NCBI GenBank assembly: GCA_029953675.1
Contig: JAMWBK010000005.1
Span: 2,976,001 to 3,040,000 of the forward strand
Origin: Rhodosorus marinus CCMP1338
Lineage: Eukaryota > Plantae > Rhodophyta
Direction: 5' to 3'
DNA length: 64,000 bases
Shown here in pieces: positions 20,251 through 59,235 of this stretch. The first letter of the stretch is position 1. Each line of letters starts with the position of its first letter. The notes beneath the pieces were generated by a model. That model saw only the letters and a list, made by a program, of their open reading frames with translations, searched no databases and was not told where the DNA came from. A program made the position numbers and the translations under genes.

Positions 20251-21339
20251 TAATCAAAGCTAAATAGACACTGTGGTCAATGCTCATATGTCCCTATCAA
20301 AAGTTTTCCTCATCTGTAGCCCATCGATCTTCTTAGAAAAAAAACGACATTCGCTTGTCCACGTTGCTTACCGATAGAACAGAAGGTCGAGGTTTACTCG
20401 ACGACGAATTCCTGAAACAGGAATGCGCAGTACCTGTTTCAGGTACTACGCCATTAGTCCCTTCTCCCTCTCCATCTGGCCGCTTTGATTGGATTCCCGC
20501 AGCTCAGCACTCACAGTGCTATGTTTGGGGAGCAACTTCCTAAGGAGACTCCATTATTATCCTCGTCAGCGATTGTTTCACTTTCCCAATAGGTCAGCAC
20601 TCTTCCTCGCTACGGGCAGAACGCGACGAGTTCTCTCCATTTCTTGCCTCCCATGGTCCAAGCAACAGCCTGCGTTCATTCAGCCGTCTCCCTCTTGGCG
20701 ATCTTGGACCTTCGTGCTCGGCAGGAATCTTGTAATTCTAAAAAATATGTATTATCATAGTCAAAAGTCATCCTACCGAACAAGCAGAGGCAAAAAGGCA
20801 GTCTATGGCGACCTATCCTCCTCCAAACCAGCACAAGGAGAGCATCAGATCGTTCCAAAATCCGATTCTAGCTACTCGTGCTAGTCCTCCAAACTAACCC
20901 GAAAGCAGCAATGGACTCCAAGAAAGAAAAAATATATATATAGATAGCTCGACATCCGCTCGAAGAAGCTCAAAAACAACCGCGCTGACTAACCAAGTTC
21001 CGCACAACCTCTAAGAAAACCTCCTCCGCCCGGAAACAGACCACTAACTATCCATAAGCAATCAAAAAAAACTTTGCTCAGTAGCTAGAGCTGCAAAGCA
21101 TCTGCTCCAAACGTCCAGACCTTTCCCCAGCACACTCAACGCCCTACCGCCCAAGCCATCCACAAAACGGCCTATGCACTCCCTAAGGAAGCCGATTGTC
21201 ACCGCTGGTGCCACTAAAAAGGGAGATAGAATAATAGAAACTTTAGAAAGTATTATTCATCGTAAACCCACAATAGGTTGTTATATTTTTGTTATGATGT
21301 ATATATAGACATTAAATTCGCTGAATTGGTATGACCGTG

Positions 21340-22450
21340 CTTGAACAGGATCAGTTCTATAGGTCATCAACTTCCTTAGTCTTCAAAATAGACACACATT
21401 TCAGCCGAGGATGATGATCTTAGTGTTGTTGGGCGGAATGGGATGTCTGCTGGGACTCGTATCTGGTTCTTCCAGGGGGGGTGTTCAGTCTAGAAGATCG
21501 CGCCTGAAAGTCCGTTAGTGACTGGATGGCAGCTCAGCAACCGATCTAACCGGTAAACACTTTTTGTCCATCGGTTCCAGACGATCGCTCGTTGGGATGT
21601 TCTTAGTGTTGTTGGGCGGAATGGGTGTCTGCTGGGACTTGTATCCGGTTCCAGACGATCGCTCATTAGGATGTTCTTAGTGCTGTTGGGCGGAATGGGA
21701 TATCTGCTGGGACTCGTATCTGGTTCTTCCAGAGGGGGTGTTCAGTCTAGAAGATCGCGCCTGAAAGTCCGTTAGTGACTGGATGGCAGCTCAGCAACCT
21801 ATCCAACCGGTAAACACATTTTGTCCGTCGGCTCCAGGCGATCGCTCGCTAGGATGCTGGGAGGAATGGGATGTCTGGTGGGACTCGTATCTGGTTCTTC
21901 CAGAGCGGGTGTTCAGTCTAGAAGATCGCGCCTGAATGTCCATTAGCGACTGGATGGCAGCTCAGCAACCGATCTAACCGTAAACACTTTTTGCCCGTCG
22001 GTTCCAGAGGGACTTGTCAGTCGAAACGATCGCTCGTTACTCTGTTCTTACTGTTGCTGGGCGGAATGGGATGTCTGGTGGGACTCGTATCTGGTTCTTC
22101 CAGAGGGGTGTTCAGTCTAGAAAATCGCGTCTGAATGTCCGTTAGCGACTGGATGGCAGCTCAGACACCCAATCCCACCGGTAATCGCCTTCTGCCCGTC
22201 GGTTCCAGAGCTTGTTCAGTCCAAAAGATCGTCCATTCGTGACTGGATAGCATGTGAGCGACCGATCTAACCGGTGATCGCTTTTTGCTCGTCGAGGGCT
22301 TCCTACTACTGTACAAACGAACAGGATTAGGTTTACTCGTCATCAACTTCCTTAGTTTTCGAAACAGACACACGTTTCCTCCGGGAGGATGATGATCTTA
22401 GTGCCTTGGGCGGAATGGGATGTCTGCCAGGACACGAATCTGGTTCTAAA
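21340..22450. repeat. Nested tandem array: four well-conserved units of about 170-200 bp plus partial units, bracketed by a diverged direct repeat of about 125 bp
   Basis: The core GGGCGGAATGGGATGTCTG..GGGACTCGTATCTGGTTCTTCCAG..GTGTTCAGTCTAGAAGATCGCG recurs near 21430, 21690, 21865 and 22060. Segment 21344-21470 resembles 22319-22447. Confidence 0.95.
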
Positions 22451-39001: not shown

Positions 39002-40679
39002 TCAGATGTTGCCGCAGACAGCGAGGAGTGCCTCATCCGTCATACGAGAGGTCCACCAGGGCACCTCGCAGAAGGGGCCGCCAACCCCCATTGCGATAAA
39101 TATCATTCCAAGAAAACCTCCAAAGAGGATAGTGATCGGCGCGGCATACTGGAAGAAGACGCTCAAACCGGTTGTGAAAGTTGCAATGGCGAAAGCCAGC
39201 GGGGAAGAGAGCGATTTCATGAGGAAGAAGTACACGGCAGAGTTGATCAGCCCACCAGCAGCTGAAGAAGTCGACAATGGATTCCAACGATACAGGAGAC
39301 CAAAAACTCTTGGTTAGTGATGCTCAACTCTTGGCAAGGTTCCAAATAAGCAAGGGTTTGATCGACCTACAGGCAGTCACTCCTGGCAGACAAGCAGTGA
39401 TCAGTTTCGTCTTCCTAAGACTTCCCCAGAAGGGCAGAACCGCGAACACAAGCAAGACTCCAGGTCCGAACATGCCAACCGCGCTCACAAAGGCGCCAGG
39501 CAGACCCGCAACGGCAGCGCCAACGAAGGGCGCAAGGTTGAACATCGGACCTGGCATGACTTGTACTAGGGCAAATCCGTTGAGGAAGACTTCTATTGAG
39601 AGAAAACCCCTTTTCACGACCTCGTTCATCATCATTGGAAGAACGACCTGTTGGTGTTTCAAAGACGTTTGGGGAAAGGAGAGCAAGAACTATCATATCA
39701 GCCAGGGTCCACGGTGCCTAGATCAGCAATCTCGGGGTGGTTGATTTCTCCTAACCTGTCCGCCTCCGAAAACGAGAGCTCCCATTCTCCAAAATGCGTC
39801 AAACATGCGGAACAGCACGGGGCTAGGTGAACCGAAAACGGCGTCGATGAGGAACAGAAGCGCGGTAACTCCTCCGAAAACGCCGAAGAGGATGTTTGCA
39901 GTTTTTGTGGTAATGTCTCTGGAGAATTCCATGTTGATGTCTTGGTCAGAAGTGGAAACATCGGTGGCAGACATTGAATCCTTGATGTAGTTGATGAGAC
40001 CACCCCCAGCGAGCAGCAAGGGGTACATCCACTTCACTTGCGTGGGTGGCGTTACGACGGCGGCAGCCGTTGAAATCATCACGATGACCGCTTTGACCTT
40101 ATCGCCCTGTATTACTCGATGTGTGATTGAGACAGCTGCGATCGTAACTTGAGCGAAGGCGGCGGCGATTAATCCATGTGTGAAGAGCGAGATGGTGTTC
40201 AAGACGCCTCCACCACTTCCGTTGAGCATGAGTCCAAAAAATGTCATGAAGAAGAAGCCGGGGAGTTGGAACAGGAAGAAGGACAAGAGTCCACCCATCC
40301 ACCCCGCCTGTACAATCCCAAGAGCGGTGACAAGCTGTGTGGAAGACGGTCCAGGAAGCGCCTGACACATCGAGAAAAGCTCCAAGAACATCTGCTCGGA
40401 GACGCCAAGGATCGTTTGCTTGTCAACAAACTGCTCGTGGAGCAGTGCGACATGCGCTACGGGACCTCCAAAAGCCACCAGCCCAAGAGATCCAAACGCT
40501 CGAGCCAATTCCCTCCACGTCGCCTCGGAAACCTCCTCCTTCCCGACATCATTCTCCTTCAGAACATCGGCCGTAGTCGGAACCTCCAAATCAGCCTTCT
40601 CCTCCACCAACCCAGCTACATCCTTAATCCCCTTCTCAAGATCCTCCTTACCCTTCTCTAACAACTTATCCGACTCCAT
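39002..40679 (-). CDS. chrA: CHR family (ChrA-like) chromate/oxyanion transporter, two-domain long-chain type
   Basis: Two homologous halves, LGLVAFGGPVAH..CQALPGPSSTQ and GALVFGGGQV|VLP..VQVMPGPMFN, with many hydrophobic segments. Confidence 0.9.
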
Positions 40680-43356: not shown

Positions 43357-44640
43357 TCACGGCTGTAGTGGCGGGAAGAGGATTTGGACTACTCCCAGCA
43401 AAGAATGTCCATCATAGTTGACCTTCTCCTGCGAATACTGGCAAGGAGGAACGAAAATAAATCTTCTGTCGCCTTCCAAAGCCAGCCCGGCGCGCGATCG
43501 TTTAACGAGGTAGTCAATGAACTGTTCGAAGCCCGGGCGATCCTCAGGAGTGACGGGCTCAAAGTACAGCATCGTAGCTTCTGGCAGAACAAACTGGTTC
43601 AGATGCAGCAGGCTAAATCGCCTCTCGACGACCAAAGTGTACGGGAGACCTTGGTCACCCAACCCGGGACCACGAATCTGGTGCGCATTCAAATTACAAA
43701 TGAACTTTCCGGTCTTTTGCAGTCTGCACTTCCATCTCGGCCTATTGGCCACCTTCGGATATATCTTTCTCCATTTGCTCGGATCTGTAGCCTCGACGGC
43801 CTCATCAATTAGCCGCCATGTGCTCTTATCAGTGTCTAATGACGGCCACAAGCGAATGCACAGCTCTCTCCAGAATCTGTCTTCGCAGCTGAACTCGTTC
43901 CACTGCTTGCAAACAAGCCGGACGTTGGCGAGGTCGGGTCCGTCAAGGAAGCTGAAGATCAGCTTAACCAATTCGTTTGGAAGCCCTTCAATGGAAGCTT
44001 TTGGGGCGGAGCTGTCCTGCATTTTCCTTGTGAGCTCCGTCGCCGCCGAATTGGATGAGACCATCAACAAAGTCCTCAAGTAATCCCTCATGAACGAGGC
44101 AGACCCTTCTCGGAGCTTTGGATGCGCGGAAATATACTGCAGTAGTTTTTCCAGTTCTTGCACCATGCATGGCACTGAATCCACCGGAAATTCTTCGCCT
44201 CGTTTGGACCTAAGAAACAACAGCGGGTTCAAAGTTTAGCACAAGAAGTCTCAAACTTCAGGACGGTGAGGGCACCCTCAAGCAAGAAAAAAGAAGACCG
44301 GGTGCTTTGAAACTTACAAAGCAAGAGTTTGCGGTCGTCTCCTCTTGTTGCTCTCCACGGTTATGGCCTGCCTAACTTCCTCCGCTTCAATCATGCTATC
44401 ATCCGCCGCATTCTCCACGTCATTGGCACGCCATTGCTCAGGTTCCTTACTTTTCTCCATAGTAGTGGAAACCTCTCCCGAATCCGAACTCCTCGACAAG
44501 AGAGCCCTTCGTTTTCTTCCGCTTATTGATTCACCTCCTCCACTACTTGTTAGCCCCAATCCCTCCTTCGTCGTTCTCTCAACACTCACTTCCTGATCCC
44601 CATCGGTGTCAACCACATGCCTCCTTTGATTTTCATTCAT
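43357..44640 (-). CDS. F-box protein with a C-terminal SPOC domain, two exons
   Basis: F-box IEGLPNELVKLIFSFLDGPDLANVRLVCKQWNEFSCEDRFWRELC. SPOC-like WKCRLQKTGKFIC..LPYTLVVERRF..FEQFIDYLVKRSRAGLA..IFVPP..LLGVV. The phase-2 intron GTAAGT..CTTAG joins the N-terminal exon. Confidence 0.82.
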
Positions 44641-45544
44641 CTCAAAACCAAAAGACTCCAAGCCAAGCACTTAGACTCCAACTACACGCCGCCTTCCCGC
44701 CTCCTCCAACCTCCGACTTTTTCTCAACCCTACAACGCCATGCAAACAGACACAAGATCCAAACTTAACAACCCAAAAATCCTCAACAAGTACAAAACCC
44801 CCTTTTCCCTCCTTCCTCCTCACACACAAAACCTCAAACAGTAAACTAAACCCACATGCTCCTCACGAAAAAAAAAACTTCCCCCTCAACTCTCCAAGCC
44901 CCTAAACAAACAACCTTCCAAAACTTGTAAACAACCCAGACCTCGCTCACCTCTTCCTTCCCATCCTAACGACCCTCAAATATACTCCTTCCTCATCTCT
45001 TCACTCCTCCCATAAAGAAACTCAACCTTCTTCTTCACTCCTTCCCCCCTCCCACCCCACTCCTTCCCGTACAAAACGCCTTTGTAATCAACCCCCACCC
45101 CCTCCCTCGCGCTGCGCCTCCCTCCCACAAACACTCAAAACCCTTACTCCCGTCTTCAAAAACCCCGTTTTCATTTTTCCCACTTCCCTTCCCTCTTTCC
45201 AAGTTCACACAGGAAAGAGCTAAAATATTCATCACTAATCACGTTCTTTAGCACCTCCACGGGCCAGCTATTTCCTCAAAACAAACAAAACAAGACGAAT
45301 ATTTTAAAAAAAACATATTCTTGTGGCACTCCCAATAAATTTTTTTTTCTGTCTACGAACTAAAAGGCAACACTAGTCCAGTCTTCCAATACGATAAAAA
45401 CCGCTCTTCTAGATTTTTTCGGTGAAATATATATCAGGGGTAAGATAAGTTCATATAGTTTTAACCCAGCCCTTCCAAGGGCGTTAAAAACGACAGAAAA
45501 TTTTTATCCAATGAAGTTCTGACAGCTGGTGGAATGTAAGTTTA

Positions 45545-45570
45545 TGATTGGATAAAATGAAGATGATTGG
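45545..45570. promoter_or_regulatory. Paired reverse CCAAT boxes (TGATTGG x2)
   Basis: TGATTGG at 45545 and 45564 in an AT-rich intergenic core. Confidence 0.25.
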
Positions 45571-46869
45571 TTACTCTGCCCTGTCGCGAATAAAATTTCT
45601 GTTTGGGGGGGGGGGGAAACATAAAAAATGTGCTATATATTTTATCTATGGGGTTGGATGGAAAATTGATTGAGATGATTGTTCGATTTGGATTATTTTA
45701 TGCCTTCTTGAACGATCTGTTTGTACTTCTCGCCAGCGCCTCCATTATATGTCGGTTTTTGGGGGGGGGGAGGGTGAGAGGTATCTTTTCCTGTTTATAA
45801 GTTTCGAAGTCGGTTTTTTGTCATCCTACGATCAACTTTACTCCATCTCGCTCCCCTCTACCCCCCTCCCCCCCCTTAGAAAACGTTGGAGAAAAAAAAT
45901 CTCATGTAAGCTTTCAGCCAAAAAGAAAATGGAAGGGGGGCCATTTTTTTGGAATCATCAGTTTTCATTTTGCTAATATTTGCCTTGTTTTGGACACAAA
46001 AGCCTCAATATTAGAACTTGTGCAAAGCTTTGTTCTCTACTCGAAAGGGGTAAGTAGTGATTTTGTCGGCGACAGCTTTCTGAATTAACGTTTTTTATTT
46101 AAATGAAGACGCGTCTGTGTGGGTAGGAAGAAAGGGGTGCTTTGGTTGGTCTGATATGTCCCAGATAAAGGACACTGGTCGTATTCTTTCTTTACAAGCG
46201 ATGAGGATCCACTTCACTTTTTGAAAATTTGTACGTTACCTCGGGTATATCGTTTAATAAGTTTACAGATATCGTTTTAGCCTTCGGAAAGACTTGCTCT
46301 GTATGGAGTATATCTCTTCCGAGCACGAGTTGGACAATTGTCTCTGAAAATTGAAATAATATTTCCACTTAAAAGGTTTGACTTTAGGGTATTTCTTATG
46401 GAATTATCAACTAGAGCGATGACTATTGCCGACGGACCGATGATACGATGTAATTGCTTTGTTATTGAGGAATAACAAAAATATGGTAGTACATCTTTAT
46501 GCTATCTTCCATGATATCGAAATATTGGAATCAGGTGGTTCCAATCTGAAGATACTTGTAAACAAGCACTTGTGTCAGAGAATTCACAGGCTCCTACGTT
46601 TACGTACCGGCATCTGTACATACCTGCTTCTGTGTTTGTCGCAGAGTTACGGCGGAAAACAGCATCTACAACTCCGGGCACCGTCCCTTTGACGACTTTA
46701 CTAGTGAAGTTGTCTTCATTGTGAATGGCTCTGAGATTCGGTGATCGAACGCCGCATTGTTGTTTGAAGCGCGTATCATGCGTCTTCGGTAGTTCATCGC
46801 TCTCAGAGTAGATACTCTCTCATACGCGCATTTGCCTTCTAAGCCCGCTGCATCGAACAAGAAGACTAT

Positions 46870-47850
46870 GCACAGGTGGTGCTGGTCGGCGGACAAGGCG
46901 GCACAAATTGGTCAGGTACAACTACCCCCCCTAGCTGAGTAGGACGACGAGATCTTTTCCCAGAGGTTACGAGGATTATCTCCGCGATGGGCAGTTCATG
47001 CGTAAATGGCACCGGGGACGCTGCACCTGTGTTCCGCAGACCGTACCGGCGGTCCCTACTCGACGGGAAGTAGCTCCCCCAACTGGCGGTCATACTCCTT
47101 CGAGTGGGCACAAAGAATATCTGCTGACTGAGCCTCTACTACGTAACGAGTTGATCCTTCAACTACTGTCACGGCTTGATAGTAGTCACTAGCACATTTT
47201 GCATCTTGGCAGCTAGCCCTCGGATACATTTCATTGCCCAGGAGGGCGTACATTTGCATGTTCCCATCGCCATCACGGGGGCTGATGGCGATGGCTTTCA
47301 GGACTGCCAGTGTGTTGTTTCGCGTAGACTGTATCCATGGTTAGTCTGGAAGTGAATATGCAAAGTGAAGCAGTGGCTATTGATTCAAATTATACCTGCG
47401 GATGTGGTTGTCTCGGTGTTCTCACTGAAGCGTTACAGGACCTTACCTAAACATCCTCGTCCAGTCACATGTGTGCATCCAACTTTTGCTCCCTGGAGTA
47501 AATGTGCGTTGCACTTAAAAGCAGGGCGGCGCGTTCCTCAGTGGATAAACTGTTTCAATGCGGGTGCCATGAAGCTTTCGCAATATCCTCGAGCTAAGAC
47601 TAGAGGGGATCTGTTCAGTTGGACAGCGAGCAGGTACAAGATCGGAATTACAACGCCCCATACCTGATCTTCTAGCACATTCGCATCGAACTCGGCTCTA
47701 CGGACTCGTGATGGTTGCATACGCGGCCATCTCTCTTGACCGCGGCGCTGGTATGCCAGCAACCCTTGCGCAGTCTGTGAGACTCTGTTGCTACGGGCAG
47801 CTCTCGCTGCTTTGACCCGTTGCCCGCCGTGCAGCAGTATCACCAGGAAC
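46870..47850 (-). pseudogene. Highly decayed LINE-type RT remnant
   Basis: Ordered fragments WGVVIPIL..LNRSPLVL, IFTSRLTMDTV, DRQLGELLPV and LPIAEIILV resemble RT motifs in the expected order. Heavily disrupted. Confidence 0.25.
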
Positions 47851-48584
47851 TAATATTCATGATTAAAGCAGACGCGTCCAAGGCAAACACCGCTTCGAGG
47901 CTATAACGCGAAGTGCGGTTTGCAGCAGTGTCACTGCCTTTCCTTGCTCTCGAGCGCAAAGCCTATGAGCATCGTGGACGAGATCAACCAAAAGCATTCA
48001 GTGCACATATCTATGACCTCAAAAAAGGGAAAGATTTACACGGTTTGCCAACCAACCCGCCGCTACCTGAACAAAAGCAAAGGCGAACTTCGAACTCCAC
48101 ATGGATCCAGAGAGCGTTGATGGTACCTCATTAAATGCTCATCGTCCGTCGCCCAGTTCCTTCAAATCCGAAACGACTAGGCTCCGCTCTCTTCCGAAGG
48201 CCTCACCTTATCCGGAGCGTGGCGACCTGACCAATTTCTGTAAACAATTTCAGCAGTAACACACTGTCCGTTGGGAACGGTTTTTTCAAAACCTTTATCT
48301 GTCACCTTTGGAATGAATCTTCGTCAGTTATTTTTAAACTAAAATATGAATATATTCTTGTCGTCGGATCGTATCGGTAGATGACGCTTTAGTAACACAA
48401 TTTATACCAACGAAAAACACTGGCGATGGGCGTTTCCTTAAAAGGCCATTCTCTGGTAAATAATATGCTAGAAATTGGTACTGAGACTGAAATAGTTCAT
48501 TTAAAGTATAAATACTGAAAATCTATGTACTAAAACAATAATCCCAGCGGAAAAAAAAGGTCCGCTGATCGTCCATAATAACAT

Positions 48585-48628
48585 GGGGGTGATTTTGGAG
48601 CAAAGCAAAATGCTCCAAAATCACCCCC
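48585..48628. repeat. Perfect 18-bp inverted repeat with an 8-nt spacer
   Basis: GGGGGTGATTTTGGAGCA (48585-48602) and TGCTCCAAAATCACCCCC (48611-48628). Confidence 0.95.
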
Positions 48629-49566
48629 CCAGGTTTGATCAAAACCAGCAACCCGATCCGATAGGTAAGATGTAAATATTTATACCGAAAAATACATTAT
48701 CGCCAAACCGAATGAAATCTATACCCCCTCCCAAGAAAACCAGCACTCGTTCCTTTGTTCTGAAAAATCCAAATATTTCTTCTTGTCACTTTTTTTTTTC
48801 TAATAGAAACAGCTGAAAATCTTGGACATGCCATTTTACTTCCTAAATTTCGTAATATCTGGAACATTCATGGCCGACAGAAAATATCTCGCAAAGGTAT
48901 ATTTTCCGCTCACTTCGTTTTTCATTTAAAATAGGCTCAGTTGGTTTCTATGGACTGGAGCGCTGGGGGGGTTCTCCCAGCGGTCTTCCAAGTTTTTTGA
49001 TAAGAAAAATGTAGAAAATTATGGACGCCCTGGGAAATTTTTAGGCGAAAAAAGATTGATCGATGTTTTTTTATTTGATAGATGATATAACCGGTAGAAC
49101 GGTTGGAGAGTTTCATGTCTTGGTGAGTGGCTCGTAACCCCGTAACTCTCCCCTCTGTGAGCTGTGAGCTATTTATTTTTTAATCTTTTGTTTTGTTTTA
49201 AAATATTTTTTTGTGTGTGTGTCTCCGGTGTGTGTATGACGCTTGACGCCAATTCAATATGAGAAGTGCAGAGCGTTTTTTCACCGGAGGAGCTCTGAAG
49301 GACCTTTTTGAGTTGGAGTGGATTGGTCTTTGGGGTGGGTGAAGGGAAGAGGATAGTGTGTGTATGTGAGGAATATGCTCATGAGGAATTGAGGGATAGT
49401 TGTTTGTGGGAGTATTGAAAGGTTTTGTTTGCTGGTGGAAAGCCCTGGTTTTGGATTGATAAGCTTCGTTAGGGGCGGGGAGGGGGGGGGGATTTCTTTG
49501 TTGGGCCTGTGCCTGTTTGTTATTTATAGTGTCGTTGACCTTTGGCCTGGATTTGTATGAGCTGTC

Positions 49567-51006
49567 ATGAAATGGGGAAAGGCTCTTAACGCGAAGGTGG
49601 AGGAGACTCCAGAGTGGTCTCCGTATTTTCTGAACTTTAAGAGTATGAAGAAGGAGCTCAAGGCTGTCAAGGAGATGAACTCCAGAGGTGTTGAGTTTAA
49701 AGGTAGGAACAGGTCTAGCTGTTGTCCATTGTCTTTCTCTTCGAATCTTGGTTTGAGTACTCTTACTGAGGTTGGATGTTCTTCGCATCACGTAGCCGCT
49801 TTGGCGTAGTCGTCTTTGGTGGGTTTAGTTTGGGAATCGTACTGAGATGGAGTTTGTATTTCTATGTGCTCAGAACGAGACTTGGACATGCACGGACTGA
49901 CTACACGCGAGTCTGATTCCAAGGAAAAACTGCTGAAATGTACGACGGACGCAATCGTGCCGTTCCTGGACAAGCTGAACGCGGAGATTGCAACCATTGA
50001 GACTTTTTTTGTAGCAACACTTACACAACTAGAAAAGAAGCTGAATGAGATCGAACGAGAACGCCGGGCATCGGTAAGTCGAGGAAAACCTCTTTGGTCC
50101 GGGTATCGCGAACTTAAGTAGCATCGAAATCGCTGAGTGTGGAAACGTTGGGTGATCTTGTGCGTGATGCAGGATGACGAACAGAAAGGAGTTTTGGCCC
50201 TGCGGGAAATCAACCGCAGCCTGAACGCGCTGGAGGAGTTCTCGCGGCTGAACTACATCTCAGCAGCAAAAATTCTGAAGAAGCTTGACAAGAGCATGGA
50301 GTCCGAGGTGAAAACAATCTACATTACTGAGATACTCAATGTTCAGACGTTCCACACTGCGCTCTCTTCGACTCTCCGAAACTTGAGCGAAAGAGTGGAT
50401 GCAATTTTAAGCGCAGGGTCTGATGTGTTCATGGCAAACTCGGGAAGCGACAACTTCAACAAAAACGCCCGGCAACGGTCAAACAATGCAAGGGATCTGA
50501 ACAATGACGTGGAGACGACTGAGGTCCTGCGACATGTTTCACTTTGTGTACCGCTGCGGCGAACTGATGGAGAACTCGAGGTTCTTGTCGTAACCGAAAA
50601 CGACGGCTCTCCTCACCTAGTGAAAGCACATATTGAGGCCGGAGAGACGAGTGTAGAAGGTAGTGCATTCATCAACCCCCTCAACGGACTTGACAAAAAG
50701 CGACTCACGAATATCACTATATATGGGTTTTTCTTTTGCTTCCTGATAGCGTTACTTCGGGAAATGAGCGAATTGGCAGGTTTGGCTGTGGGCCAAGAGC
50801 GAAATGTCGGGGAGTATCTGTCCACCACGAAGAAGAACACCGTTTACTACGCGTATACGGTGGTTGTCGAGCGCGAGCTTGAGGATTGGCCAATGGCTAC
50901 AACCGTTCGAAGACGATGGCTGCAGATAGACGAATTGATTTCCGAGCTCGAAGACAACACGGGAGTCCGGGTGCTGAGAAAGATCAATGAGAGTCCGCCC
51001 ATTTGA
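49567..51006 (+). CDS. SPX domain fused to a DIPP-type (plant NUDT17/18-like) Nudix domain, four exons
   Basis: SPX: MKWGKAL..PEWSPYFLNFKSMKKELK, FLDKLNAEIATIETFF and LEEFSRLNYISAAKILKKLDK. Nudix: LRHVSLCVPLRR..EVLVV..KAHIEAGETSVE|ALLREMSELAGL..ELEDWP..RRRW. Introns 49703-49873, 50074-50172 and 50660-50749 are all phase-consistent. Confidence 0.85.
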
Positions 51007-51544
51007 TCGTGGTAGATTCTCCTCAGCACTTTTTTAACTGGCTGTGCACAAGCTGGCCAGTGCTTTGTGCTTGCGCGCTCTTGAAGGGTTTTGCCGGTCT
51101 CGGAGGTGAAAACTGCGGGAAAAATGGACGCGCTATGTACCATATAGCGCCGCGGTGGGAGCCGCCTATTTGTTTTGCTCAACACTTCAACTTCCTTGCC
51201 GTACACGAACAGGAAGCGTCTGGGCTGCTCGTTTGCCCGATCCGGATGGGGTTTAGGATGCTTCCTATCCTTGCTGGTTAGCAAAGGCAAAGGGGTTAAT
51301 CTGAATCTTGTCAACTGGTACAAGCAGTACTCGATGGGGATGCGTTTCAGTCCGTACGCGCACTGCATATAAAGCGCACCTTCTTTTAAGCTATGAGTTA
51401 AGCACACGTACGTCTCCGCTGGGGAGACCGCTGAAACACGAGGGGATGTCTTCAAGAGTAATAGGGCTTGACGTCTCCAGTGAAGTCGTCTCTACCCCTA
51501 CCTTACGTTCCCTTTACAAACTCTTGGGAGCAACGAAATACACT

Positions 51545-51592
51545 GTCCAAAATGCTTTCCACAAACACGTCCAAAATGCTTTCCACAAACAC
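51545..51592. repeat. Exact 24-bp tandem duplication
   Basis: GTCCAAAATGCTTTCCACAAACAC x2. Confidence 0.95.
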
Positions 51593-51825
51593 ATCCAAAA
51601 AAACAATAACAGACGCCTTCAAAGACAAGGCACAGCAACAAGCAAATCTCCTGCACTACATCCAGCGGGTGTGGGGTTTCCCCATGGAAGTCCTAATGGC
51701 CCATGTAGAGGACAAGGGTATGGTGAAAGAAACAACTGTGCAAAGAACCGACCTCTTGCCGCACGGCAATGCCAGGGAGGAATCATACAAGTGCATGACG
51801 CGCAGGCACTCCCGTGCAGGCGTTC

Positions 51826-53446
51826 TCATAAGCCGGTTGCAAGGCGCCCAAAGTCGTCCGTTGTCCCGGTCCATGTCTTTCTGCTTTGTTCTGAATGAGT
51901 ATTGCCGAAGTCCAACCCAATGGAGTTTCTTCTGTTCTTGTATTCGTTACGAATGTGTTTGTAGTCAGCAACCTGCACGTGCTTCGGATGTTTTCCTTTC
52001 TTCCCCATAACCTCTCTCAACCATTGCTCGGCTTCCGCTTTCTGGATCGTATCCCCTTTCACCGGAGGCTGCAGTGGGGGTTCCAGAGGGGCTGGAATTT
52101 CCATTTTCTCCAGTTCTTCCCAGCTAATTCCTGACGAACGGGGTTTAATAGGGCATCCGGGAGAATAACGTTGTCAAAGACTCTTGGCCACCAAAAAAGC
52201 CCGCTAAGACATAACCAACAGTCGCAAAAGAATCGGCGGCGGTCATATGTTTGCTTCCTACCTTTGAAAAAGGGATGACCTTTGACCTCCTCTGCGTCTC
52301 CTTGACTCCCTAGCCTTTTGTTCACGTCCTTGACTAGCAGCCCGTTAATAAAGCTCTTCATCTCAACGCTCAAGATTTTGGTTCGCTCGTCCTTGTCCAA
52401 GTCCAACTCCTCCTTTTCAATTTTGCTGAACAATTCTTTGTAATCGTCGGAGCGAAAAGGGGGCCTCCCCGCGACGAGAATGTACGCCAGTATTCCCAAC
52501 GCCCACCAGTCCACAATCCTTCCGTGGCCTTTTCGGGATAGAATCTCCGGAGCCTATAATAGAGTATCGGCGCTTACTATCAGCGGAGGACAATGCCTTG
52601 CACTAAGCCGCAATTTCAAGCTTACCTGGTAAACGGCAGTACCGCTGATGTCCTTGATTGACGTGTCAGTTGCTTGACCGGAAGCATAGCGGCCCGCAAG
52701 GCCGAAATCGGTTATCCGAATGTGCCCAAGCTCGTCCATGAGGATGTTTTCTAGTTTGACATCACGCCACACGAATTTGAATCGATGTAGTTCTCCTATA
52801 GCAACTGCGAGCTCCGCTAAATAGAACTTGGCTTCCTCTTCCTCCAGAGTACCGTTCTTCGCCAGTAAATCAAACATATCTCCTCCGCTCAAGTACTCCA
52901 ATACCAATACGACCACATCTTCGGTTTGAAAGCCACTGTGGCATTCGACGATGAACGGGTGCGGTCCAGCATTTCGCAGGACTTGACGCTCAACCCTGCG
53001 AACAGTCAACGCAAACGCGAGGAAAAAAAGTTAGCTAGCTTTCTAAGCGATCGGCCAGATTTTCCCTTGCAGAACGCTCAGTATCCGCTAGAAAAACCTA
53101 AAGCGTGTGTCTAAGAAGCATGTGTGAAAAAACCTTACGTGATGTTCTCGAGCTGATTTTCCCTCAGGAGATGCTCCTTGTTCATTATCTTCACAGCGAA
53201 TCTCTCCTGAGTGGACCTCTCCCTCACCAACATCACCGATCCAAACGTTCCTTTCCCCAAGACTCCCTCCAGGTCGCATCCAGGAAGCATCGGAGTCCCT
53301 GGAGGTGCTACGAATCCATCCAAATACGTTCTATCCGTAAAAGTCTTATGAAGTTCAGAAGGAGCCCCTTGCGGACGCTCCTTCTCCTTCGCATCATCTC
53401 CTCCAAGACAACACTTAAACATCCTTACACACTCCCGATTGGGCAA
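51826..53446 (-). CDS. AGC-group Ser/Thr protein kinase, four exons
   Basis: LGKGTFGSV, FAVKIM, HPFIV, LEYLSGGDMF, WRDVKLENIL, DFGLA, GTAVYQ|APE, DWWALG, RLG and HPFF. The N-terminus has an MFKCCLGG dicysteine. Confidence 0.93.
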
Positions 53447-56179: not shown

Positions 56180-57451
56180 ATGGAGAGCGTTCGGACGCTG
56201 ACGGGTTTTGCTTTGCAAGCGTCCCCTCCGCAGGGAGGTTTGAAAGCTGAAGCCTGTCCAAATTACCGCCTTTTCGAGAATTGGGACGGGAAAAATTGTC
56301 CTATGATGCTTCTGTAAGTCTGAAGAACCCCTTCGTTCTTGTTGCTTTCGAGTCTCTTGGCTTTGCTGAACGAGTTTTTCTCCACACCCAGGGCTCCTAT
56401 GGAGGTTCTGGCTGATAAACAGTTCAGAAAGGCCGTGGCAACGGTCGGTGGAATGGACGAGATGGTAATGGAGTTCATTAGAATCCCTGATCAAGGTCAT
56501 CCACGAAGCCTCGCGAATCGCTACAAGTCGGATGAGCTTGGGTCGATGACCATATCACCACAGGTGGGTATCAAACATCTGACGAGCTTGACGGTCGATC
56601 CTCGATCATATGTGGTAACTGAAACGAAACTATCCACCTTTCAACACGTTCAATAGGTCATGGGATCCCACGATCAGCGAATGTGGGTAGCAACTCGTGA
56701 GCTGGTCAAGCGCGGCGCGTACCGAGTGGACTTGAACTGCGGATGCCCGGCATCGAGGGTGACCAAGAAAGGAAGCGGTGCGAGCCTCCTGAAGACGCCG
56801 TCAATTCTCGGAGGGGTTGTTCGAAGTATGATCGGTTCTGGACCGGATAAATTTCCGAACATTTCGGTGAAGATGAGGAGCGGGTTTGAGGATACACAGT
56901 TGTTCCTTGAGAACGTGTACTCGGCGATTGATGGTGGTGCCAGAGCAATCACTGTACATCCAAGAACAAGCTACCAGAAGTATAGTGGACGGGCGGATTG
57001 GAACCTCATCAGAGAGGCCAGGAAGATTAGCACCGTTCCGATCATCGGGAATGGGGACATAACCAGCGTCCAACGAGCAGCGGAGATTGTTGAATCAACC
57101 GGTTGCGATGCTATCATGATCGGCAGAGGAGCTGTCCGAAACCCTTGGCTGTTCCACGAGATCCGTGGCCACTTCACTGGCCAGACCATTGCTCCTCCAA
57201 GTATCAAAGATGAATGGACTTTTTGGAGTACTTATAGGCAAGCTGGGCGAGAGTTCGGAGGAACAGCTCGTGGGAACACGGGAAGGCTCAAGATGATCCT
57301 GGGGTACTATTTCGACAAGTGTACCTGGATGAAGGAAGCCAAGGCTCGCTTGCTGCGTTCTCGCCACGTGGATGACGAATCGTTTCTGTACGAAATCATT
57401 GACGTCCTTGAGCAGCATCGAAAACACTGCTCCGAGTGCAGCTTCGAATAG
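56180..57451 (+). CDS. tRNA-dihydrouridine synthase (Dus family, bacterial type), probably organelle-targeted, three exons
   Basis: LL|APMEVLAD..FRKA, PQ|VMGS, VDLNCGCPASRV..GSGASLLK, SVKMRSG, VHPRT, PIIGNGDI and IMIGRGAVRNPWLF. Confidence 0.92.
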
Positions 57452-57665: not shown

Positions 57666-59235
57666 TTAGTTTGGTACAAAAAGTGAGTGCTTGGTGTTAC
57701 AATGGGATTCCGACTCTCGCCCCGATCAGCAGATGATCAGATGGTTCTTCTTTGCTTGGGAAGGACGGGGTTGTAATCTAGGATCGAGTAAACGACAACA
57801 AACAACACATGAAGACAAGAAGAAGCTTTGTCTGAGCGTTATGCATGGTACCCTTGGCCTCCATTTTGCCCCGTCCGTAAACGGGGGGGGCGATCTCACC
57901 TCGCTTCGGTGAGGTAAGGGATCAACCTCAAGTACTTTCACGTCGTTGGAAACGAATATATAGTCCAAGCAATCCACGAAGAGCCCCTGAGAGGATATGT
58001 GGGCGTAGTTGGTGAAATCTGGTTCATTGCCGTTCACGGACATGTATGCACTTTTCATCGGTTCCTGCAGGTTCGGGGTCCATTCTCCCACTTCGGACAG
58101 GTTCGGGAAAGCTCCACTTTCCTGGGTGAGTTTCCCCGTTGTCACCAACCGGTAGGCAGGGTCAGAAATTTTCATGTTGAAGTCACCTAGCCATGGGGAA
58201 CAAAAAAGAAATACTTCAGATCCGATTCAATTCAAGTCGCTTGTCGCGCAGTCACTTATGTTCAAGATCTTGTTCTGGTATTATACCGGCGAGGAGGAGT
58301 GGGTCGCCATTAGCGAGGCGCTGGGCGCTCTGGACGGCCAGGGCGGCATGGATGACCATCACTTTTGGTGCGAAAAAGGCACAGGGCATGTGGTATGTAC
58401 TACAACAGACTGTTTTCCCCGTCTGTTTACATTGAAGTCGGAGAAACGCGAAGATGTTCGGACGCGACTTTGCAAATGCCCACTCGTCCAACGCAAGGCC
58501 TTTACCCTTTCCCGCTGCCCCAACCGGTGTCCTCCAAACCCGCAATTTGGTTGAAGTGGACTCGGACTCCTCAAAGCTGTCCTTCTTCGCCGCGGCAGTC
58601 TTCGGCATCTTGGGATTCTTGCCGAGCCTCTCAATCAACTCCTCTACCACATCGTACTTTTCGGACGGATAAGCTATTCCCACACCCAAGTAGCCGTTGC
58701 TGAAATTACCACTGAGTCCAAGCACGAATTTATACCCACTCTGCGCGAAAAAATCTGAAAGGGGTCCACTCCATGACATGGAAACTTCTTGAAGACAGAT
58801 CACTGAGCCCAGAAGGACTTCATTGTCGAGCTTGGATATAACTCTCTTGAGTCGGGTACGTGATTCCAGGTCCTCCGACATGCATTTACTGAACCGCGAC
58901 TTTTGCGAAAGCGAAGAAGAAAGCACGTTGTAAGTAACCACCCTCTGGTTCACCTCATCTGCTCGGGTGGGAGCCTGCTGATCCATCAGCTTGATCCTCT
59001 CGTTAATCATATCCTGAGCAATGGCCGAGGTCTGCGCGCTGACCGGCCTCCTAGGCGGTTCAGAAAGTACTCTCTCCTCCGTATCCAAGTTCCCTGAACA
59101 TCGCGTTTCACGCAAAGATCTCATGAAAACCCTCAACCCTCCATGCTCACTCCGTCTCGCCAAGCTCCGCCACATGTTTCCTTCAAAAGTTCGATGCGGC
59201 GAGACAACTACAAACGCCGCATCAGTTGCAGGCAT
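57666..59235 (-). CDS. Endonuclease/exonuclease/phosphatase family protein (CCR4/nocturnin/PDE12-like), probably organelle-targeted
   Basis: VVTYNVL, VICLQEV, YHMPC, LLA|GDFN, FTNY, CLDYIF and EPSDHLLI. Leader MPATDAAFV. Confidence 0.88.

Follow-up and report, generated by a model that had tools for sequence, protein, structure and literature searches.

An SPX domain joined to a degenerate DIPP-like Nudix-fold domain in Rhodosorus marinus and other red algae

Proteins with an SPX domain are classed and understood by the partner to which this domain is fused, and surveys of SPX fusions list EXS, MFS, RING, VTC, SLC/CitMHS and Na_sulph_symp partners besides a number of plant oddities (PMC8717665; PMC13573052; PMC11528361). 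In the SPX-EXS proteins PHO1 and XPR1, and in SPX-MFS, SPX-RING (NLA), SPX-VTC4, SPX-SLC13/CitMHS and SPX-ANK-GDPD, an N-terminal SPX domain regulates a C-terminal phosphate-handling effector. A Nudix partner is absent from the fusion classes of the three surveys. Here we analyse a gene of the unicellular red alga Rhodosorus marinus CCMP1338, whose product combines an SPX domain at the N terminus with a Nudix-fold domain at the C terminus in a single polypeptide. It lies in a stretch of 64,000 nucleotides (GCA_029953675.1, contig JAMWBK010000005.1, positions 2,976,001 to 3,040,000 of the forward strand; eukaryotic DNA with a G+C content of about 48%), which we call the window and from whose first letter all positions are counted. 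The protein resembles the known SPX fusions in the order of its domains but differs from all of them in that its partner stems from an enzyme whose substrate is the SPX ligand itself, the inositol pyrophosphates (PP-InsPs), and a partner from such a ligand-degrading family is undescribed in the searchable literature.

The closest described relatives of the two halves are free-standing proteins. Stand-alone (class 1) plant SPX proteins (rice SPX1 and SPX2, PDB 7e40 and 7d3y; Arabidopsis SPX1-4) share the MKxGK start and the KILKKxDK helix, are of similar size and are likewise soluble, but they end soon after the SPX domain, whereas the red-algal fusion adds a DIPP-like domain of 130 residues. 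This domain resembles the DIPP, Ddp1 and Aps1 pyrophosphatases and plant NUDT4, 12, 13, 16, 17, 18 and 21 in fold and profile, yet the known enzymes of this type consist of one domain. We favour the reading, with a probability of roughly 0.55, that an SPX sensor is here tethered to a catalytically dead DIPP-like domain that would bind a ligand or a partner.

One gene and one chain for two domains

The features of the gene are the following, all on the plus strand:
49567..51006: SPX / DIPP-like gene, whole coding sequence from ATG to TGA, 359 amino acids
49567-49702, 49874-50073, 50173-50659, 50750-51006: exons 1 to 4, from sequence reading and translation
49703-49873 (171 nt), 50074-50172 (99 nt), 50660-50749 (90 nt): introns 1 to 3, GT-AG
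49567..50418: SPX domain (Pfam PF03105), residues 1-194, interrupted by introns 1 and 2
49648-49650: K28, with the lysine cluster the predicted PP-InsP-binding surface
50269..50292: lysine surface cluster K145-I-L-K148-K149-L-D-K152 (KILKKLDK) in the long SPX helix
50419..50523: inter-domain linker, residues 195-229, Asn-rich in the window species and predicted to be disordered
50491..50511: linker motif R219-D-L-N-N-D-V225, directly preceding the first Nudix strand
50524..50991: DIPP-like Nudix-fold domain, residues 230-355, interrupted by intron 3
50626..50784: degenerate Nudix box A264-L286, coded by 50626-50659 and 50750-50784 across intron 3
51007..51854: probable 3' untranslated region (UTR) of about 850 nt, through which the transcript of a related strain aligns

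The product is identical over its full length (100%) to the NCBI entry 'hypothetical protein NDN08_001895 [Rhodosorus marinus]', and the gene has the same span of 1440 nt in the public assembly. An earlier note on this DNA, made from its letters alone, had placed both domains in one open reading frame (ORF), and this is borne out: the SPX and Nudix-fold domains sit on a single mRNA of one gene. Exon 3 by itself codes for the C-terminal half of the SPX domain with its KILKKLDK helix, the entire linker and the N-terminal half of the Nudix fold, and since it bridges the domain junction, the fusion is independent of any splice prediction. Furthermore, a contig of 1984 nt from a JGI sample of a related strain (L004) encodes a protein (P0002) that is 89% identical to that of the window, and aligns to the window in four blocks (49535-49702, 49872-50074, 50172-50659 and 50748-51854) whose ends coincide with the modelled exon boundaries; all three introns are absent from it, and it therefore represents a spliced mRNA of the related strain. 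The homologue of Porphyridium purpureum is one unbroken, intronless ORF of 1125 nt (L001:6001-7125, plus strand), and transcript ORFs from several other genera in MMETSP carry the same architecture.

It could be argued that adjacent SPX and Nudix genes were merged in annotation, or that the gene is a decaying pseudogene, as the Pfam scores of the single sequence are modest, each intron length is divisible by three and intron 3 leaves the frame open. However, exon 3, the four-block alignment of the spliced transcript with its single ORF, the MMETSP transcripts and the continuous Porphyridium gene, together with an overall ratio of non-synonymous to synonymous substitution rates (dN/dS) of 0.16, refute such an artefact, and we give it practically no weight.

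Some minor observations concern the transcript. The lengths of the three introns are all divisible by three, and intron 3, which is without an in-frame stop, interrupts the Nudix box, so that its retention would add 30 residues to the Nudix helix. A 195-residue Logan fragment from another species (P0011) appears to run into an intron at this very position. The probable 3' UTR contains a 24-nt tandem repeat, ACACGTCCAAAATGCTTTCCACAA, at 51540-51600 (plus strand; 2.5 copies with 94% matches in TRF).

The SPX domain scores 40.4 bits in Pfam against a cut-off of 27.8 (E=5e-10), and among solved structures, rice SPX2 and SPX1 match residues 1-207 at E=2e-12. An AlphaFold2 (AF2) model built on the alignment of 11 family sequences, with a mean predicted local distance difference test score (pLDDT) of 80, is all-helical over residues 3-200, mostly at a pLDDT of 80-94. 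The earlier note had reported an intact lysine cluster, and indeed KILKKLDK (residues 145-152) aligns with the KILKKYDK helix of rice SPX1 and SPX2; in the family alignment (A2, the same 11 sequences) K28, K145, K148 and K149 never vary, and K152 hardly does. The basic surface expected for PP-InsP binding thus appears essentially intact, with slight erosion in Rhodosorus. The protein of the related strain lacks exactly five residues, NFKSM (residues 23-27; window 49633-49647).

The linker, described in the earlier note as short and Asn-rich, comprises 35 residues of which 8 are Asn, and its pLDDT is below 50 over residues 195-229. Conservation within it is very uneven: residues 195-218 show a mean pairwise identity of 14%, whereas residues 219-225 (family form R-D/A-L/I-N-N-D-V/I/M) reach 86%, with R219, N222, N223 and D224 invariant. 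By resemblance, the counterpart of this motif in DIPP1 may be the N-terminal segment R10-T-Y-D-G-D-G, in which R10 is in contact with phosphates of the substrate (PMC8064635).

The C-terminal domain is DIPP-derived. It scores 32.6 bits against Pfam PF00293 (NUDIX) within the full protein (E=9.5e-8) and 35.7 bits as an isolated domain, with a cut-off of 21.1. Residues 214-344 match human DIPP1 (NUDT3) at E=2e-5 in the search against solved structures, and the DIPP match of the single window protein in the HMMER alignment has E=5e-6. A profile (A3) built from the C-terminal domains of eight members reaches 54 bits with DIPP1, DIPP2 and DIPP3 (E=1e-13), compared with 38 bits for the oomycete Nudix effector 8zjb, 24 bits for Ap4A hydrolase (E=3e-4) and 22 bits for MutT1. 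AF2 models residues 232-355 as an alpha/beta domain at a pLDDT of 83-93, and five of the six top rows of a Foldseek search against the PDB are DIPP1, DIPP2 (NUDT4) and DIPP3, the sixth being 2duk ('MS0616'); these rows have target-normalised template-modelling (TM) scores of 0.77-0.84 (about 0.80) and a root-mean-square deviation of about 2.3 Å over about 127 residues, with E-values of the Nudix matches down to 1e-8. The profile scores and the Foldseek matches thus indicate an ancestry specifically from DIPP/Ddp1 and not from Nudix proteins in general. The fusion and the DIPP enzymes have in common KK-x-A-x-C at the start of strand 1, LEDW and R-x-W, and in the Nudix helix the structural E57, R65, E69 and G72 (DIPP1 numbering). 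With both domains above their Pfam cut-offs and recovered by AF2 and Foldseek, the union of SPX and Nudix in one chain that the earlier note had read from the sequence stands, as does the DIPP/Ddp1-type affinity it had assigned to the Nudix part, and the motifs it quoted (RHVSLCVPLR, EVLVV, ELEDWP and RRRW) are all present.

Degenerate Nudix box and putative function

An intact catalytic Nudix box is a hallmark of DIPP, Ddp1 and Aps1, and it is lacking in this family, a detail that the earlier note had not flagged. In the window protein the box reads A-HIEAG-E-TSVEALL-R-E-M-S-E-L-A-G-L, with REMSEL (R278-L283) at 50758-50775; relative to GX5EX7REUXEEXGU the first Gly and the last Glu are replaced (A264, L283), whereas E270, R278, E279, E282 and G285 are present. 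With DIPP1 equivalences as read from HMMER sequence alignments rather than from superposed coordinates, the position of E70 is never acidic (0 of 11 members; L, S, V, A, Q, T or W, and L283 in the window), the three Rhodosorus sequences have Glu at that of E66 and the other eight have A, G, V, K, S or H there, and that of the first box Gly (G51) is A, V, S or T but never Gly. The equivalents of E57, R65 and G72 are invariant throughout, and that of E69 is always E or D.

These positions have been mutated in several enzymes of the DIPP type, where DIPP1 E66 corresponds to Ddp1 E80 and Aps1 E89, and DIPP1 E70 to Ddp1 E84 and Aps1 E93. In Ddp1, E80 and E84 hold magnesium ions, E84 binding Mg1, and the variants E80Q and E83A have little or no activity (PMC8064635); in Schizosaccharomyces pombe Aps1, the double exchange E89A-E93A abolishes hydrolysis of polyphosphate (polyP), 1-IP7, 5-IP7 and IP8 (PMC11323792); and the E79Q variant of MoNUDT from Magnaporthe is inactive (PMC12678693). 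As the fusion family has lost catalytic glutamates at positions whose exchange inactivates the published enzymes, its members are on the whole unlikely to perform the canonical, Mg-dependent pyrophosphatase reaction. In the Rhodosorus protein only the last Glu and the first Gly are missing, and for it such catalysis is doubtful.

The earlier note had proposed a sensor and an eraser of the same messenger in one chain, that is, a turnover module. This attractive idea, that SPX senses InsP8 and switches an active PP-InsP/polyP pyrophosphatase in the same polypeptide as a self-contained feedback device, is probably wrong. The domain does descend from DIPP and is under purifying selection, Rhodosorus retains R278-E279 and E282 of the REUXEE segment, and the Porphyridium gene lies head-to-head with a PPK1-type gene, which hints at a link to polyP. 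Nevertheless, the Mg1 ligand (DIPP1 E70, Ddp1 E84, Aps1 E93) is replaced in every member, the E66 equivalent is lost in 8 of 11 and the first box Gly is gone from all, and laboratory mutants at the equivalent positions are dead. An enzymatic role shared by the whole family should have conserved the catalytic residues, as it has in the free-standing Nudix matches of the same profile search (P0028, P0047 and P0143), which keep PKG...RExxEE. Activity in spite of the absent Glu would imply that a Nudix mechanism of a non-canonical kind operates under the direct control of SPX. The alternative that the earlier note had put in brackets, a second binder instead of an eraser, fits the sequence better.

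The C-terminal domain is thus most likely a pseudo-enzyme that lacks the magnesium-binding glutamates, and the preferred model of an SPX sensor with a dead DIPP-like partner can be outlined as follows. The SPX domain with its basic surface would sense PP-InsPs and report their level. The flexible linker with the invariant R-x-L-N-N-D motif would tether it to the domain derived from DIPP/Ddp1/Aps1, which keeps the DIPP fold, E270, R278, E282 and G285, and basic residues at the equivalents of K18 (R or K in 9 of 11 members), R89 (10 of 11) and R117 (11 of 11), with K90 mostly basic as well. This pseudo-DIPP domain would hold PP-InsP or polyP uncleaved, or dock a partner protein, and SPX would couple such binding to the cellular phosphate status, so that the whole protein would act as a reader, buffer or adaptor rather than as a turnover enzyme. 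A precedent that speaks for a pseudo-enzyme is the dead Aps1 E89A-E93A mutant, which keeps partial biological function, and for which IP8 binding or sequestration was speculated (PMC11323792). Most fusion members lack the same two glutamates by nature, whereas the Aps1 variant is an engineered allele of an active enzyme and has no SPX domain.

Degraded Nudix boxes are known from the NUDT9-H domain of TRPM2 and from NrtR, where the fold is reused as a ligand sensor on another module. These two come from the lineage of ADP-ribose pyrophosphatases, with ADP-ribose as their ligand, whereas the red-algal domain is of the DIPP lineage, and the comparison is one of analogy only.

A more far-reaching version, which we regard as possible but put forward only tentatively, is that an eraser has turned into a reader: the dead DIPP pocket would still bind a PP-InsP isomer or polyP, and with two messenger receptors on one polypeptide the protein would be a coincidence detector, a two-site clamp or a PP-InsP buffer, and a core phosphate switch of red algae. 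Should the dead domain indeed bind PP-InsPs or polyP, it would be the first case of a PP-InsP reader that evolved out of an eraser, and the suggestion from the Aps1 mutant that dead DIPP-type proteins can act via IP8 sequestration would gain support.

Several observations weigh against a dead DIPP-like domain that still binds the SPX ligand. The DIPP1 phosphate anchors S39, S40 and R41 (the Ser-Ser-Arg loop), R20, H91 and K133 are not conserved in the family, unlike in the DIPP enzymes, and R115 falls within a two-residue alignment gap; R20, R41 and H91 are, together with R10, peculiar to DIPP1. The C-terminal domain is net negative with an isoelectric point (pI) of about 5, and PP-InsP binding by such a dead domain is not assured; charge was also considered as a proxy for polyanion binding, but a pI of about 5 was judged uninformative taken alone. 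The Rhodosorus clade, with R278-E279 and E282, may have kept residual or non-canonical catalysis, and E267, E296, E317 or D343, for example, might serve as a substitute metal ligand. On the side of the SPX domain, the window protein has Phe (F24) in place of the phosphate-binding Tyr, which is present in the stand-alone plant proteins and kept by the other genera of the family; the Tyr/Lys phosphate-binding pair is thus only partly intact in the window species, and relaxation of the SPX ligand site, in its N-terminal part, seems to be under way in the Rhodosorus clade. Finally, the AF2 geometry between the domains is not confident (predicted TM score 0.52).

Some of these points would also fit a C-terminal module unrelated to PP-InsPs, which interacts with a protein or binds another ligand such as a nucleotide, a cap or ADP-ribose, so that the fusion would be a red-algal SPX regulator of the stand-alone type. 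Its SPX half is closest to stand-alone plant SPX1/2, with Acorus SPX2 and a Chlorokybus protein among the SPX-only kin; many phosphate anchors are lost and the domain is acidic; and non-enzymatic Nudix folds are known (PMC8064635). Stand-alone plant SPX proteins act on MYB-CC PHR factors, whereas red algae are reported to lack MYB-CC PSR/PHR factors (bioRxiv 10.1101/2022.04.15.488190), which makes an SPX output unlike that of plants plausible and demands another output partner. We nevertheless consider such a module unlikely, as the basic equivalents of K18, R89 and R117 and the invariant R219 fit a retained phosphate site, and the present data point to no partner or alternative ligand.

A conserved family of red algae

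The earlier note had called for a search for the architecture; the fusion itself was recovered, but it is not unique to the genome of the window and belongs to a conserved red-algal family. A word-indexed search of 5.8 billion proteins yielded five relatives, and in a HMMER profile search of 1.84 billion cluster representatives about nine clusters span both domains (9 matches, E<=1e-30), while matches scoring below 94 bits contain SPX only or Nudix only. The named members come from Rhodosorus, Porphyridium purpureum, P. aerugineum, Rhodella violacea, Compsopogon caeruleus, Rhodochaete pulchella and Pyropia vietnamensis, all red algae, and the remaining ones are JGI or Logan fragments bearing the same motifs. 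We take the genera with the fusion to cover five red-algal classes. No members from Florideophyceae, Cyanidiophyceae or organisms other than red algae were among the fusion matches of the profile search, and a wide occurrence of the architecture outside red algae was ruled out by this search, in which all named clusters with both domains are red-algal. The fusion is restricted to red algae. Among the closest SPX-only relatives are stand-alone proteins from plants and streptophyte algae, and the closest Nudix-only ones include a small Physarum protein.

The earlier note had taken the fusion as possibly undescribed, and this has held up in the searchable literature: we found no description of it in the literature on SPX-Nudix proteins, on SPX evolution in algae and on red-algal SPX proteins, and the database labels of family members read only 'SPX domain-containing protein' or 'hypothetical protein'. 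For red algae, one of the surveys drew on Cyanidioschyzon, Galdieria and Chondrus (PMC8717665), all from groups missing from the fusion matches. We would place the family as a new SPX subclass with a new pseudo-Nudix domain, and would not file it as a PP-InsP pyrophosphatase, as it lacks the defining catalytic feature. In the bangiophyte Neopyropia yezoensis, an 'SPX3' gene is induced 5.2-fold by phosphorus deficiency (PMC11641120). This gene, given without an identifier or sequence to compare, may be an orthologue of the fusion family, of which a Pyropia member exists. Provided that the dead domain still binds PP-InsPs or polyP, the family would open a way into the phosphate sensing of red algae, among them the nori crops Pyropia and Neopyropia, in which the SPX-PHR pathway of plants is reportedly absent.

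Although restricted to one lineage, the fusion is real and conserved, and its C-terminal half is not decaying. Across genera, the mean pairwise identity is 41% for the Nudix-fold domain, 30% for SPX and 14% for the linker, and between the window gene and the transcript of the related strain dN/dS is 0.17 for the Nudix-fold domain, 0.10 for SPX and 0.31 for the linker. Because its identity exceeds that of SPX and its dN/dS is low, the Nudix-fold domain is under purifying selection and hence functional, though degenerate.

The proteins of Porphyridium aerugineum (P0154) and Pyropia vietnamensis (P0159) carry low-complexity insertions of about 65-90 residues, rich in Ser, Thr, Gly and Ala, in loops of the DIPP-like domain (columns of about 400-475 and 550-612 of alignment A2), and the Pyropia protein has 571 amino acids compared with 359 in the window. 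The DIPP-like fold evidently tolerates large loop expansions.

Neighbouring genes and other features of the window

The surroundings of the gene hold the following features, from gene calls except for the RNA:
21331-21554, plus strand: U3 small nucleolar RNA
39567-40679 (approximate), minus strand: chromate transporter
43357-44640, minus strand: F-box/SPOC protein
51826-53422, minus strand: protein kinase, convergent on the SPX / DIPP-like gene
56180-57451, plus strand: Dus tRNA-dihydrouridine synthase
57697-59175, minus strand: Exo_endo_phos protein
from 60249, plus strand: NDUFA12

In Porphyridium purpureum (VRMN01000002.1), the homologue lies head-to-head, at a distance of about 1.3 kb, with a gene on the minus strand (L001:1707-4706) for a bacterial-type polyphosphate kinase (PPK1) of 999 amino acids with the domains PP_kinase_N, PP_kinase, C_1 and C. 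A tblastn search with this PPK and the other Porphyridium neighbours gave no match in the Rhodosorus window, and there is no PPK among the gene calls within 8 kb at the Pyropia locus (L006). A conserved linkage of the fusion to PPK, suggestive in Porphyridium, is ruled out by these two loci.

The 3' UTR inferred from the transcript extends to the end of the coding sequence of the convergent kinase, and the same convergent kinase (L002:1672-3030, minus strand) is found next to a homologue that is 48% identical (P0003). The pair looks like a case of conserved microsynteny or of overlapping 3' ends.

Upstream of the SPX / DIPP-like gene, about 4.9 kb (44641-49566) are without a called gene. No ORF of at least 110 amino acids is found between 44671 and 49197, and beyond 49197 the sole one in this region is an ORF of 197 amino acids on the minus strand (49198-49791), which runs antisense into exon 1. 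The stretch might act as a promoter or in regulation, or be an element missing from the annotation, and ahead of the ATG it includes a (TG)n run at about 49215-49236 and a G-rich run at about 49476-49492. The U3 RNA, far upstream, is a full-length match to Rfam RF00012 with 48.6 bits (gathering threshold 34, E=1e-7).

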